64,000 nt of DNA from Neoconidiobolus thromboides FSU 785 (lineage: Eukaryota; Fungi; Entomophthoromycota). The DNA is taken from assembly GCA_025603075.1 (NCBI GenBank), contig MU626297.1:62001-126000 (forward strand), read 5' to 3'. Position 1 is the first letter of the stretch, and each line of letters begins with the position of its first letter. A program made the translations under genes and the position numbers. Below the pieces are notes generated by a model. The model worked only from the letters and a program-made list of their open reading frames with translations. It made no database searches and was not told where the DNA came from. Positions 2,726-42,594 of this stretch are shown here, in pieces.

Positions 2726-3527
<802 letters not shown>

Positions 3528-4851
3528 TTAATAGTAATAAATGATAATGTATTAATATATTTTTTATTAGCATAAATAAAAAGAAGAGCGTGAAGATTAC
3601 AATTTCTCCATTTAAAATGGTCTTTGCTTTTATTTTTGATACTTACTACTTTAAATAAAATGTATCGATGAATTTTATGTCATGTTTTTTTGTTTCTTTT
3701 AATGGAGAACTGGAAGTGCTTATTTATATGCTTATTTGTTTACACGCTTAGTTTGCTGTGTTTTATAGTTGTTGGTATTTATTTTATTACATAGAAGATA
3801 CAGAATTAAAACGATTAAAGTTTTAGATAGTTATTAGTATTATAAAGATAATAATAACTTTGAAATTTATATTAACAATCTACTTTTATTTAATGACATT
3901 AACAACAAAAATAATATAACTATTACTTAAAGCTATCAATAATAGATTATGACTTTAGCATGGTATAACTATAGTAAATAAAAGTTAAAAAAGTCAAATA
4001 ATTTAACATAAATGTATGATAATGTCCCTTTTTGTTTAATAATTCAACCAATAACTTTTTAAATTTTCATTGAATGAAGAATGGACAAAACAGAGAAAAC
4101 CAAATAAAGACATTACTAAACGTAAAAACAAGCAAAAATGATACAATAAAAGTTACTAAACATGATTTTTATAAAATCTAAATTCCATAAACCCATATCG
4201 AAAACAGTAGAACTACCTTCAACCGAGCAACTGATATTCTTGTAATAAAATTCAGTTTAAGCTGCAAATATCATTTCAATTTAAAGTTGCCTACTTTAAC
4301 AATTCTTTACCAATCGGAGTATAGTGTAAAAACCAGTGAGATCAGATCCTTTCTAAAGAACAACTTAGATTCCGCAATATATTTTTTTGCAACAAGTAAA
4401 TAAAAGGTATATTTTTAGTGAGCAAAAAAAATTATGCCCATTTAGTAAGTATAGCTGATACCTTTTTCCAGAATCATTGGCTTGCTTTTAAAATTATTTC
4501 ATCTTACTTTGGGGATTTTATGACTAATTTTCAAATAATAGTTAAAACTTAAATTAAAATTGGTTTACTGTCTAGATGGCACAATTAGCTTATTATTCAA
4601 TCAGAGTTTTCAATTCAATTTCTACTTTGATCTTTTATTAGAAATAAAAATACTAAATTATACCCATAACTTTAATATTTGGCCATAAACACCTTGTTTT
4701 CTTTACCAACAAGTCAATTTGTTACTATCATACAAAAATAACATTTGCTCAATTTTATAAGATTGTTCTATAATAAAAATATACCTAAAATTAGATACTT
4801 TATATGCCAATTCAAAGATCAATATTTGATAACCGAAATAGGTGCTGTAAG

Positions 4852-4951
4852 ATGTGGGTATGTTTTTTTCATTACTTTTTTTATCTTTTAAGTGCTATTT
4901 AAGTGGAAAATTTGTTAGTAGAATTCTTAAATAAAAAATACATCCCCATAT
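4852..4951 (-). mobile_element. MITE-like dispersed repeat, copy C
   Basis: Ends ATGTGGGTATGT / ACATCCCCATAT. Reverse complement of the copy A/B core. Confidence 0.75.
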
Positions 4952-5606
4952 TCTAAAACTTATTTTAATTTATTTAGTTGATTAGTAATATTAAAACTGA
5001 AACTAAAAATATAATAACAATCTAAGCCTTATATCATCACTTTAAATAAACTTTATTTTATAATAAAAATATATAAGTTTGTATTAAATTAGGATAAATT
5101 AACGTTATAGATAAAGAGAAATGATTGTTGCCCTACATTTAAATTTATATGAGCAGATAAGGAAGCCAAAAAGAACATATTACTTTATTAAGAATATGTA
5201 TTTATCTTGAGGAAATAACGACATAGAATTGATAAAAATGAAATGATAAAAGGTTATTCTTTAGGCTAAACGAGAATAATAAAAGTATTTACTGATAACC
5301 ACAAATCAATTACTTTTATTAATAAAAAGTAGATTCTGGCTGATTCAATTATCATATGCTGTGGGAATTTTTAAGAATCCTTGTGTAATAATTTGAAAAT
5401 TATATCTTTTTAATTGGATAATAAAGGGTCTTTTATCTTTATTTGGCAAGTGATTTGTCAAAATTAAATTTGATAAGGAATTAACAAGTTATTACACAAA
5501 ATATCATAAATTTATATCAGATAATAACACTTCAAATTTAAGACCAACGAAGATAGGAGAATATAAAAACAACTTTAATGACATTTACTCTTTAACTTTA
5601 TCTAAA

Positions 5607-7465
5607 ATGGTATTAAAAAGTAATTTAAAATAAAATAATTGGGATACTTTAAATTAATATATTTATAGACAGTATTATAAAGTTAGCTTCTAACACAAGA
5701 GGTTTATTCAAACTCAAACCAGATAGTACGTTACTATTAAAAAGAAGTATAAATACGAGTTCAGACAATAAAACAAAAAGCGGCTTTAGATTTTTAAGGT
5801 ATGCTTACCGTGGAGGTGTTATTACAATTCAATTGATTGCTTTGGCTGTACTTGCAAACGCCATATTTCATTCCAATCCAGTTGTACAGCCACTTGAACC
5901 TGTTTTAGAAAAACCGGAGGATGGTCGTAAGCGTGTAATTATTTTAGGATCCGGATGGGGAGCCACTTCGTTGATCAAGAAATTAGATCCAAAAGAGTTT
6001 GACGTTGTTATAGTATCACCAAGAAATTATTTCCTATTTACTCCTTTATTACCAAGTTGTACCGTGGGAACTTTAGAACACCGTTCTATTTTAGAATCCA
6101 TTCGTTATATTATTCGACATAAAACTGGAAATGTTCAATTTGTTGAAGCAGATTGTACCAAGATTGATTCAAAAAATAATAAGATAACTATTAAAGATAC
6201 TTCCGAAATACAGGGTAAAATTAATTCTTCCGAATTATACTATGATTATTTAGTAGTTGCTGTTGGAGCTGAGACTGCAACATTTAATATTCCCGGTGTA
6301 AAAGAATACTCATGCTGCTTAAAGGAAATTTGGGATGCAAAGAAGATAAGGCAACAATTAAGTGATTGTATAGAAACTGCTGCTTTTGCTGGACAAGATG
6401 AAAAAGAAAAAGAGCGTTTGCTTCATATGATTGTAGTAGGGGGTGGACCAACTGGTGTAGAATATGCTGCTGAGTTACAGGATTATCTTGCAGAGGATCT
6501 TAAAAAATGGTATCCGGAAATTGCTGATAAGTTTAAGATTACTTTGATCGAAGCTTTACCAACTGTTTTACCCTCCTTCTCAAAAACTTTAATTGACTAT
6601 ACTGAGTCTACTCTCCGTTATAATAAAATTAATGTTTTAACCAAATCTAGGGTGCAAAAGGTAACTCCAACTACTGTTACTATTAAGAATGCCAATGATG
6701 AAGATGAAGAGATTCCATATGGTATGTATAAATATAAATTATACTATTTAACTTAATCTAACTATTTTTAGGCCTTTTAGTTTGGGCTGCAGGTAATACT
6801 GCTCGTCCAGTTGTTAAAGATTTGATTACCCAATTCCCTGAAATTCAAACAAATAGGTAATTAATGATAGTTTTCTAAGTAAATAATTTATTGGTAAAAA
6901 AAATAGACGTGGTATCTTAGTTGATGATCATTTAATGATGGTAGGTTCTGACAATATTTTTGCTCTCGGTGATGCTACAGCAACTAGGTAATTGAATTTT
7001 ATTAGACTATTAAACTTTATATAACTTTAATTTAGTTATGCCCCAACAGCACAAGTTGCTAGTCAACAAGGAAAATACCTTGCTAAATTATTAAAGTCTA
7101 CTTTAAACGCTGATAACTTCCAAGAAGTAAAGACTAAACAAAAACCTTTCCATTATACCCATAACGGCTCATTAGCGTAAGATTATTATTTTAATTTATA
7201 TAAATTAGTTTATTAATTTTTTGTAGTTATATTGGATCTGAAAAAGCAATTGCAGATATACCTTTCATGAATATTAATTTTCCAATAGGTGGTGCTAGTA
7301 AGTTTAATAACTTGTATATTTAATTTGGTATTAATTTCATTAGTGACTTATCTTTTCTGGAAATCGGCTTATTTATCCAATTTATTCTCTATTCGTAATG
7401 CTGCTTTAGTATCCTTAGATTGGACAAAGAAATTCCTTTATGGTAGAGATATCTCCAGAGAATAG
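5607..7465 (+). CDS. NDE1: Alternative (type II) mitochondrial NADH dehydrogenase, Nde1/Ndi1 family, multi-exon
   Basis: MVLK|NSIIKLASNTRGLFKLK... is a basic presequence-like N-terminus. Two dinucleotide-binding motifs (ILGSGWGA, IVVGGGPTGVEYAAE), RNYFLFTPLLPS, ALGDA, APTAQVASQQGKYLA, and a C-terminal FYGRDISRE* at 7465. Confidence 0.95.
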
Positions 7466-40476: not shown

Positions 40477-40651
40477 AGTTTATTTATTAAATTTGATAAA
40501 TAAAATGTCGAAATTTTGGTTTTTTATAAATTTAGTCGTTTAATTAATTGCATTTATTATATTAGTTCATTAAAATATAACCCCCCTTTATGTATATTTA
40601 TTAGGAACAACTGTTAAATTGATTTTTTTTTATTTTTTATTTTTAATTATA

Positions 40652-41676
40652 ATGTTTCAATCATTGAATATAATCAAAAGAATTCAATTAGGTCAATTCA
40701 TAAGTTTTTTATCATTTATGATAATTATAACAATTGCTATTTCTGCTGGTTTACAGAATAATAAAGGGTATAAAAAGTCACCGTTAAATCAATTTATTGA
40801 AGAAAATAAATCATATGAAGGTGTATTAGTTTATTTGACCATTGAAGATATTAACCCAAGTGAAAGAACAATTCAAATTAATAGTAATATTAAATTAAGT
40901 TATAACTTATATGAAAAAATAAAAGGGAATAATGGTGAGTTTAAGTTTAATTAAAATAAATTTAGTTTATTATTAATTTTAAATTATTTTAGAAACTGTT
41001 AATATTTTAGTTCATCACAGTAAAAAATCGTATCAATTATATAAAGATAGACCAATGTAATTTATAGCATTTAAAATTAATATTATTATTTATCAATCTA
41101 TTTAATAGAGAACAAAGTACATTAATTGATTTTCAAACAGGTGAACCAGATAATTATCCATTTGATTCATACGAATGTTCATTTCCATTTAAAGTATATA
41201 CCAATAACAGTATTACTTTAGATACCAAATTTGACTCTGATATTTCTTATCAATTGTTCAATATTAATTTTTCAACCGAACTAAAAACTAATGAGTTTTC
41301 ATTATTTTTTATAAGTTTAAAAGTGAAAAGAGCTAATTTAGCTATATTTTTTTCTTTTTTAATTCATTTAATATTATGGTGTTTACCTATTAGTTTAGCT
41401 TGTTTAGCTATTAATATTTTTATGAATAAAGTAACTATCCCTGCTCCATTATTAACTTTTGGTCCAGTTATGTTGTTTTCTATATCAGCTATTAGAGCAG
41501 CTCAACCGGGTATTCCTGAAGTAGGAGTATTAATAGATTTATTTGGTTATATTTGGTAAGAGTTATTAATTATATATTGCTATTTTTATTAATATTTATT
41601 TATTTATTTTAGGTCAGTTGTTATCATATCTATTAGTAGTATTGTTATTATACTCTGTTGGGTAGTTCGTAGTTAA
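40652..41676 (+). CDS. DUF4436-like membrane protein with pentameric ligand-gated ion channel (Pro-loop)-like signatures, 4 exons
   Basis: N-terminal hydrophobic helix; beta-rich domain VLVYLTIEDINPSERTIQIN; GEPDNYPFDSYECSFPF; SLKVKR; then three hydrophobic helices with IRAAQPGIPEVGVLIDLFGYIW. Introns ~40935-40992, ~41057-41108 and ~41556-41612. Confidence 0.75.
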
Positions 41677-41756
41677 CTAGTAAATTAAAGTAATAAATTA
41701 TTTGATATAATAGAACATAATGATATTAAACATACATAATGATAAATTTATTAATA

Positions 41757-42594
41757 TTAATTAAAAGAATAAGATTTAGCTACTCTTTTTATAAAGTGTT
41801 TATATTGTAAGTAATTCATATTCTTACTTAATGAATAATATTTAATTAATTGTGATTTAATCCAATTTTTCAATTGATTTTTTAATTGTGTATTATTGAA
41901 TTTATAATCTTTATGAAATAATAATATATTAGAAAAGATTATTAAAACTATTTTTTGAATTGTAATGTAAGTAATAGATTCTAATTTCATTGTAGTGTTA
42001 TTTAGTTTGTCATTCTTTTTTTTTAATAAAATTAAATTGACTCTATTAATGTTGATTTTTGGTTGAATATATTTCCATGTTTTATATATAAGTTGTTTAA
42101 TAATATCTAAAAATTAAAATATTAATATGAAGTTGTATTTAACTTTAAAAAAATACCTACTTAACATAGCAGATAGATTTAATTTATAGGACAATTTATT
42201 AATAAATACTATTAATTTTTGTATTATATTTAATATTAAATGATAAATATTATGTTTAATTCCTTTCATTCGAGTTTGGTAATAATTTTGAAATAACTTT
42301 GGTTCTATAAACTTCATATTCTTTTTTATGTTTTTTAATTGAAACATTTGATTTTGAAGTTTTAATCCAATTAATCTATTTATTATATATTTCATTAATA
42401 TTATATTTATTATACAACAATAATTATATATTATATTTAATTACCTTATTAATTTTGGTATAACTTTTTTAGTAGCCCCATTAGTATAATCCATTGTAAA
42501 ACTATTAATACAAGTATTGAAATTTAATTCTGAATTATTATTTAATAAAACTTGTAAATTATTAGTATCAATTAAATAACCACACCAAGGAAAT

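Follow-up and report, generated by a model that had tools for sequence, protein, structure and literature searches.

A DUF4436 membrane protein of the fungus Neoconidiobolus thromboides as a probable remote, rearranged relative of Pro-loop receptor subunits

The window analyzed here is a stretch of 64,000 nt from Neoconidiobolus thromboides FSU 785, a member of Entomophthorales (GCA_025603075.1, contig MU626297.1, positions 62,001 to 126,000). Its plus-strand gene at 40652-41676 is an expressed and selectively constrained gene for a 285-aa membrane protein of the DUF4436 family. The spliced product is identical, letter for letter, to the NCBI entry K502DRAFT_323800 (P0001 in our protein database), annotated as "hypothetical protein". 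We suggest that this protein is probably a remote and topologically rearranged relative of the subunits of Pro-loop receptors, or pLGICs (pentameric ligand-gated ion channels). These are among the best-studied receptor channels, and in their subunits the M2 helix is buried or pore-facing while M4 is the lipid-facing outer helix. The parts of this interpretation do not stand equally firm. A shared fold and a common ancestry with pLGICs are very likely. From sequence and models, we slightly favor that the N-terminal helix, here called TM0, takes the position of M4, whereas we lean a little against the protein being a real gated pentameric channel.

The inventory of 2016 found no member of the superfamily in Fungi (Jaiteh et al. 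2016, PMC4795631), and this reported absence shapes current views of its evolution. In the literature searched, we found no prior link between DUF4436 and pLGICs and nothing relevant on fungal pLGICs or on pLGICs without M4; PF14494 was absent from it, and DUF4436 appeared in a single paper, as one entry in a table of expression data. It is possible that the link has been described elsewhere.

A Pro-loop receptor fold followed by three helices

The AlphaFold2 (AF2) model was built with the family alignment and has, at full length, a predicted local distance difference test (pLDDT) score of 91.4 and a predicted template modelling (pTM) score of 0.85. Its elements come in the order helix 3-37, short helix 44-51, nine strands within residues 58-190, and helices 192-222, 228-246 and 257-284. 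The segments and motifs of the protein are located in the window as follows (numbers of homologues refer to an alignment of 103 sequences, from which all conservation counts were taken).

40658..40762, plus strand: TM0, the N-terminal transmembrane (TM) helix (aa 3-37), seen in hydropathy and as an AF2 helix with pLDDT of about 93-95
40823..40897, plus strand: beta1-beta2 hairpin (aa 58-82), AF2 strands 58-68 and 73-82
41155..41166, plus strand: Pro-loop motif Y132-P133-F134-D135, at the tip of the loop that joins strands 116-123 and 136-147
41329..41331, plus strand: pre-M1 arginine R190, present in 102/103 homologues and matched in the profile alignments to the pre-M1 Arg of CRT1 and GABA-A beta2
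41335..41427, plus strand: M1-equivalent helix (aa 192-222), in which the family conserves W206; from AF2 and the alignment
41443..41499, plus strand: M2-equivalent helix (aa 228-246), ending in the invariant R245; from AF2 and the alignment
41500..41529, plus strand: M2-M3 loop (aa 247-256), with P249 invariant and P252 and G255 near-invariant
41530..41670, plus strand: M3-equivalent helix (aa 257-284), with the invariant D259 and with W265, its coding sequence interrupted by intron 3

The predicted structure is a beta-sandwich ectodomain of the type found in pLGICs and in acetylcholine-binding proteins (AChBPs), directly followed by three helices in the M1-M2-M3 arrangement. With the full-length AF2 model, Foldseek found at least 500 matches in the PDB at E<=1e-3, of which the best 50 are all pLGICs, headed by the alpha7 nicotinic acetylcholine receptor (nAChR; 4.9e-9). 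In the VIA-align comparison with 48,161 PDB representatives, the top 19 are also all pLGICs (Z 8.8-10.4), and their colinear alignments cover 208-219 residues between model residues 54 and 285; the structural alignments to the PDB begin at model residues 54-57. After the pLGICs, the list continues with generic helical bundles that match the transmembrane domain (TMD) only, at Z of about 8. Since Z values of about 10 are not far above this helical background, the ectodomain was modelled alone (147 residues, pLDDT 91.9). The best 50 Foldseek matches of this second model are all pLGIC or AChBP, as are the top 32 of 48,161 in VIA-align (Z 10.2-6.5, with 119-142 of the 147 residues aligned), and the first unrelated sandwich appears at Z 6.3 with 99 residues aligned. 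Clusters of pLGICs in the ESM Atlas were matched at TM-scores of 0.51-0.55, both with the AF2 model and with the Atlas's own ESMFold model. Bacterial DUF4436 clusters matched at a TM-score of 0.83 over residues 1-285, so the placement of TM0 is reproduced. The first-pass annotation had proposed the architecture of a pLGIC subunit, with a fold lacking any resemblance to the pLGIC beta sandwich as the observation that would speak against it. The resemblance is present in the Foldseek and VIA-align results and is specific to pLGICs and AChBPs, and the profile, full-length AF2, ectodomain and ESMFold searches all agree.

The four motifs named in that annotation all fall where it had put them. The beta1-beta2-like VLVYLTIEDINPSERTIQIN corresponds to aa 58-77 and lies within the modelled hairpin, SLKVKR (aa 185-190) ends in R190, which aligns with the pre-M1 Arg of pLGICs, and QPGIPEVGVLID (aa 248-259), described as an M2-M3-like loop, lies between the second and the third of the three helices. 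The chain stops at aa 285, one residue past the third helix, and carries the extra N-terminal hydrophobic helix that had been described. The segment NYPFDSYECSF (aa 131-141, 41152-41184) keeps its position and Pro-loop register, but its cysteine was ruled out as a Cys-loop cysteine: the column of C139 holds Ala, Ser, Thr or Gly in the family, and no upstream Cys is available as a partner. The Pro loop is therefore a Cys-less one, resembling that of prokaryotes.

Sequence similarity to pLGICs

The profile of the 103 homologues was compared with 177,635 PDB sequences and gave 12 matches at E<10, all of them pLGICs, from four subfamilies. They include octopus CRT1, a chemotactile receptor (6.7e-4), GABA-A beta2 (0.016), a pH-gated chloride channel (0.12) and the Torpedo nAChR beta subunit. 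The register is constant among these matches, with YPFD placed on the Cys-loop YPFD/YPLD and R190 on the pre-M1 Arg, and it continues into M1. As a single sequence, the protein weakly matches Neur_chan_LBD (PF02931), its sole Pfam match besides DUF4436, with aa 130-168 on the Cys-loop region (E 0.06, 13.2 bits against a cutoff of 26), and nAChR DEG-3 (E 7.8), in the same register as the profile matches. A protein-language-model feature search returned nothing usable (score 0.75).

F/W/Y occupies column 166, where strand 166-175 begins, in 86/103 homologues, and this column is a possible counterpart of the buried beta9 aromatic residue (GLIC W160). Loop position 68 is Asp in 79/103 homologues and Asn in K502DRAFT_323800. 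This column may match the beta1-beta2 loop Asp of GLIC, which we take to join the Pro-loop Asp and the pre-M1 Arg, themselves salt-bridge partners in the superfamily. Seven positions are conserved across all pLGICs, and the published frequencies are 100% for the Pro-loop Pro, 94% for the pre-M1 Arg, 88% for the M2-M3 loop Pro and 77% for the M1 proline (M1 14') (Jaiteh et al. 2016, PMC4795631, Table 1). Five of the seven have a near-invariant counterpart in DUF4436: three positions of the Pro loop, the Arg ahead of M1 and the Pro in the M2-M3 loop.

Conservation within DUF4436

The Pfam match to DUF4436 (PF14494) has an E-value of 1.9e-26 and 93.4 bits, compared with a gathering cutoff of 23.2, and places aa 47-282 on positions 13-253 of the 255 in the profile. 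Queried with exon 3 or with the full protein, the word-index homologue search retrieved K502DRAFT_323800 alone. An exhaustive search over representative sequences found 766 relatives at E<=1e-3, with identities of at most about 31% over the matched stretches. Nearly all follow one plan, composed of an N-terminal TM helix, an ectodomain of ~150 aa and a close set of three TM helices; [Y/F]P[F/L]D stands about 55-60 residues before this set. TM0 is present in about 90/103 homologues.

Three residues (R245, P249 and D259) are invariant in the 103-sequence alignment, and Y132, P133, D135, R190, W206, F239, P252, G255 and W265 are each at least 90% conserved, P252 in 101/103. The Pro-loop columns hold Y in 95 and F in 8 sequences, P in 102, F in 83, and D in 93 (E in 8 more). 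In pLGICs, the M2 signature is a basic 0' residue and Leu at 9'; in DUF4436, the M1-M2 loop has the family consensus R-x-R-K-V-E-P-P, and L237/L238 are conserved mid-helix in M2. The best-conserved residues of DUF4436 are those of the ectodomain-membrane junction, as in pLGICs: YPFD, the pre-M1 Arg and the M2-M3 prolines. The beta1-beta2 loop Asp, family-wide although replaced by Asn here, may also lie at this junction.

Mean conservation is highest in the M2-M3 loop (2.87 bits), followed by M2 (2.59), by M3 and M1 at similar values (2.07 and 1.97) and finally by TM0 (1.36), while hydrophobicity decreases from TM0 (2.40) through M1 and M3 to M2 (1.12). The two run in opposite ways, as would be expected if M2 is buried or pore-facing and TM0 is exposed to lipid. 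Basic residues are found on the N side of TM0 (K9/R10 here, R/K at columns 9-10 in the family), in the M1-M2 loop (R-x-R-K) and at the end of the protein (R284). Their positions suggest that the ectodomain is outside and that TM0 runs from in to out, like M4. The models fit with TM0 being structural rather than a cleaved signal peptide, considering its high pLDDT and its inclusion in the bacterial match at a TM-score of 0.83.

Some of the relatives, P0002 (513 aa), P0003 (771 aa), P0012 (631 aa) and P0087 (2627 aa), contain at least two DUF4436 units, with two YPFD motifs per predicted protein. Either the models fuse neighboring tandem genes or the proteins may be natural concatemers; if real, concatemers would constrain the subunit arrangement and stoichiometry. 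No further DUF4436 copies were found in the 64,000-nt window.

Gene structure, splicing and expression

The gene lies in a window with 24.4% GC and has four exons and three introns, all with GT..AG splice sites, and not the "four introns' worth" of eukaryotic history mentioned in the earlier description.

40652-41676, plus strand: gene, 285-aa product
40652..40934, plus strand: exon 1, aa 1-94 plus one base, with the start codon, TM0, the short helix and the beta1-beta2 hairpin
40935..40992, plus strand: intron 1, 58 nt, joint explicit in contigs of 4 runs
40993..41056, plus strand: exon 2, aa 95-116 with a partial codon at each end, from spliced contigs
41057..41108, plus strand: intron 2, 52 nt, joint explicit in contigs of 4 runs
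41109..41555, plus strand: exon 3, aa 116-265, with the Pro loop, beta7-beta10, pre-M1, M1, M2, the M2-M3 loop and the start of M3
41556..41612, plus strand: intron 3, 57 nt, where contig pieces jump from 41557 to 41619 in all four runs
41613..41676, plus strand: exon 4, coding for aa 265-285, with the TAA stop codon

Spliced contigs of the gene were found in four public runs from three studies by comparing contigs with the window. The RNA nature of these runs is only guessed, and intron-less contigs would be hard to account for otherwise. Since the spliced contigs retain exon 3, the YPFD motif is part of the mature transcript, and splicing that drops this exon, which had been raised as a possible objection, was not found in the contigs of the four runs. 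The spliced contig of a related organism (run X6, window 40671-41690) has ~96% identity and the same intron positions. From the 25 listed differences between the two transcripts, 19 are synonymous and 6 non-synonymous, with no replacement in M1-M3, which indicates that the gene is under purifying selection.

A 2931-nt spliced contig (run X1 record 1, window 40500-40933) runs unbroken for ~1.9 kb upstream of the start codon, which points to read-through, or else to an assembly that merged the gene with its upstream neighbor. On the other side, open reading frames of the minus strand at 41757-42395 begin ~80 bp past the stop codon of the gene.

Distribution and origin of the family

DUF4436 is pan-fungal and is also found in bacteria. 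Among fungi, the named relatives belong to Zoopagomycota (Dispira, Tieghemiomyces, Dimargaris), to Entomophthoromycota (Conidiobolus, which the tree groups with the clade of Zoopagomycota), Mucoromycota (Rhizopus, Syncephalastrum, Calcarisporiella), Chytridiomycota (Synchytrium, Lobulomyces, Quaeritorhiza) and Blastocladiomycota (Blastocladiella, Coelomomyces, Sorochytrium). A DUF4436-domain gene is also known in Aspergillus flavus (PMC6616650), where the entry "DUF4436; metal-dependent hydrolase" has a higher relative expression in a poor-biocontrol strain and is listed beside stress-response genes (PMC6616650, Table 4). The bacterial members belong to Actinomycetota (24 loci and one Microbacterium plasmid), Pseudomonadota and Acidobacteriota. 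The description of the family as mostly actinobacterial is not correct, since the closest relatives of K502DRAFT_323800 are all fungal, from four phyla, and the bacterial clusters come from three.

A maximum-likelihood tree of 28 sequences (16 fungal and 12 actinobacterial, with all other matches left out) separates fungi from Actinomycetota on one branch (94/97). Its fungal part recovers groups for Blastocladiomycota, Chytridiomycota, Mucoromycota and Zoopagomycota, and K502DRAFT_323800 is placed on a long branch beside Conidiobolus. This split, the phylum-level groups and the three introns support the view that the gene is old in fungi and was not transferred recently, in agreement with the "old acquisition or retention" suggested by the first-pass annotation.

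The bacterial loci were collected with one actinobacterial DUF4436 member as query, and the open reading frame calling was naive and noisy in high-GC DNA. Among the neighbors seen are an alpha/beta hydrolase, an extracytoplasmic function (ECF) sigma factor with a SnoaL domain, a formamidase, a ceramidase, and a short-chain dehydrogenase/reductase (SDR) with TetR. At seven loci (L009, L011, L013, L015, L019, L020 and L023, positions ~3400-6650), the DUF4436 gene lies between the ECF sigma factor with a SnoaL domain and the alpha/beta hydrolase, a synteny restricted to the close relatives Amycolatopsis and one uncultured actinobacterium. In a metagenome-assembled bacterium (L002, 3581-6921), it directly follows a neutral/alkaline ceramidase on the same strand, and the pair occurs on a second contig; this pairing, not seen at other loci, may hint at a lipid link. 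The copy at 6001-6864 of the Microbacterium hominis plasmid CP070347.1 (L001) is on a 60-kb plasmid near a resolvase gene, from which it follows that DUF4436 can be mobile in Actinomycetota.

Evaluation of the proposed relationship

K502DRAFT_323800 is not a canonical pLGIC, since it has no M4, a small ectodomain and a short, apolar M2, and does not reach the Pfam thresholds; it is filed under DUF4436, as a divergent and rearranged relative of the superfamily. Several observations weigh against even this remote relationship or its functional extension. The sequence signal of pLGICs is marginal and local, and by itself it is suggestive rather than conclusive. In the Pfam scan of the protein, PF02931 stays below its gathering threshold and PF02932 was not detected; apart from the match of K502DRAFT_323800, no Neur_chan family is among the top 25 listed when all 103 homologues are scanned at E<=1. 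The ectodomain-only profile reaches only E 0.5 against the PDB, and the TMD-only profile finds no pLGIC there and merely an insignificant GPCR (G protein-coupled receptor) match, so the profile signal needs the stretch from the Pro loop to M1 in one profile. In the structural comparisons, global TM-scores are modest (0.35-0.55) and the root-mean-square deviations are 4-6 A. The beta9-beta10 hairpin, site of loop C, is reduced to a minimal five-residue turn, which makes a canonical orthosteric pocket doubtful. There is no family-conserved Pro in M1, where the consensus around W206 is M-W-x-L-S/A; P209 of K502DRAFT_323800 is 19 residues past R190, compared with 12 residues between the pre-M1 Arg and the M1 proline in GLIC. 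M2 is short (19 residues) and mostly apolar, with a proline-rich family consensus (Pro at 242), and a basic 0' residue is not apparent in an obvious M2 register. The gene neighborhoods of the 26 bacterial loci were rejected as a functional clue because no partner is conserved across genera, and they offer no functional hint.

The same features of M2, M1 and loop C would also fit a family that has the ancestry and fold of pLGICs but is no longer, or has never been, an ion channel, acting instead, in another stoichiometry, as a membrane-anchored sensor, a scaffold or a regulatory subunit. The role of the conserved interface between ectodomain and membrane would then lie in folding or signalling and not in gating. 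The Pro/Gly-rich M2 without recognizable polar or charged rings and the lack of similarity between the TMD-only profile and pLGIC pores speak in its favor. We nevertheless consider it unlikely, while giving it real weight: the strongest conservation is in M2, the M2-M3 loop, the Pro loop and the pre-M1 Arg, which together make up the gating interface of pLGICs, and M2 is the least hydrophobic of the TM helices, as expected if buried or pore-facing. ELIC is also reported to work without M4 (PMC8327344).

Much less probable is that a generic beta sandwich and three hydrophobic helices, with a fortuitous YPFD, resemble pLGICs by chance or convergence, with no pLGIC ancestry. Beta sandwiches and helical bundles are common, the full-length Z of about 10 compares with about 8 for the helical background, and the sequence E-values are weak, the best being 6.7e-4 for the profile and 0.06 for Pfam. 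However, such a coincidence would have to explain why all 12 PDB sequence matches, the best 50 of Foldseek and the top 19 and top 32 of VIA-align are pLGICs or AChBPs, why unrelated sandwiches align over ~100 residues and these over 119-142, and why the motifs are kept family-wide at equivalent places (the loop tip, the strand end before M1 and the M2-M3 loop). A recent transfer of the gene from bacteria into N. thromboides, instead of an old fungal gene, has hardly any weight for us. It could draw on the occurrence of the family in three bacterial phyla, including the Microbacterium plasmid, but the gene has three spliceosomal introns and 24% GC like its surroundings, its nearest relatives are all fungal, and the 28-sequence tree splits fungi from Actinomycetota and recovers four fungal phylum groups.

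Under the interpretation of a rearranged Pro-loop receptor relative, the N terminus would be cytoplasmic and TM0 would cross the membrane from in to out, in the direction of M4. TM0 is probably peripheral and lipid-facing, replacing the missing C-terminal M4 and giving a layout like that of a circular permutation. Subunits would probably stand side by side, most likely as pentamers, with homomers and heteromers both possible, and the conserved, least hydrophobic M2 would face the central pore. An event in the ectodomain, such as the binding of a ligand or an ion or a change in pH, would pass to M2 through the interface of Pro loop, pre-M1 and M2-M3 loop. As a tentative extension, less secure than its parts, DUF4436 might be a hitherto unrecognized, circularly permuted branch of Pro-loop receptors, in which the outer helix has shifted to the N terminus from the C terminus and whose members are still gated pentameric channels.

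If this is true, fungi from chytrids to Dikarya, and many bacteria, own minimal pLGICs, which would overturn the fungal absence and extend the superfamily to a new kingdom. The replacement of M4 by an N-terminal helix would be a natural experiment on the purpose of M4, and a protein of ~285 aa would give structural and biophysical studies a very small scaffold. For DUF4436, a family without known function, the proposal would also be a first idea of what it does.

Comparison with known systems

Compared with its own family, K502DRAFT_323800 is a full-length member that shares every invariant residue, on a fast-evolving, AT-biased long branch. It deviates from the other members by Asn for Asp68, Ser for Pro242, Thr at loop position 225 and Pro for Glu227.

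With the prokaryotic Pro-loop receptors (GLIC, ELIC, sTeLIC, DeCLIC), the protein has in common the beta sandwich followed by M1-M2-M3, the [F/Y]PxD motif at the tip of the beta6-beta7 loop without flanking cysteines, the pre-M1 Arg with the M2-M3 loop Pro, and the concentration of conservation at the ectodomain-membrane interface. The structural matches include sTeLIC (6fl9_A, Z 9.6), GLIC (6hja_A, Z 9.3) and DeCLIC (6v4a_A, Z 9.3). Unlike the GLIC/ELIC type, it has no C-terminal M4 and carries an N-terminal TM helix instead, its ectodomain has about 135 aa against about 190, with a minimal loop C hairpin, the M1 proline is not conserved, and M2 is shorter and more apolar.

The animal Cys-loop receptors gave the best profile matches (CRT1, 6.7e-4; GABA-A beta2, 0.016) and also the best fold matches (alpha7 nAChR, Foldseek 4.9e-9; ZAC, Z 10.2). 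However, the Cys-loop disulfide, the M3-M4 cytoplasmic domain and M4 of these receptors (nAChR, GABA-A, the glycine receptor GlyR, the serotonin receptor 5-HT3, ZAC, CRT1/CRB1) are all missing in the DUF4436 protein.

A further comparison is with ELIC without M4, which is reported to keep channel activity after the deletion (PMC8327344, citing its reference 22). This engineered truncation has a core of ectodomain plus M1-M3, and its reported activity indicates that such a core can in principle gate. In comparison with that construct, DUF4436 is a natural family, with a conserved N-terminal helix in addition to the core.

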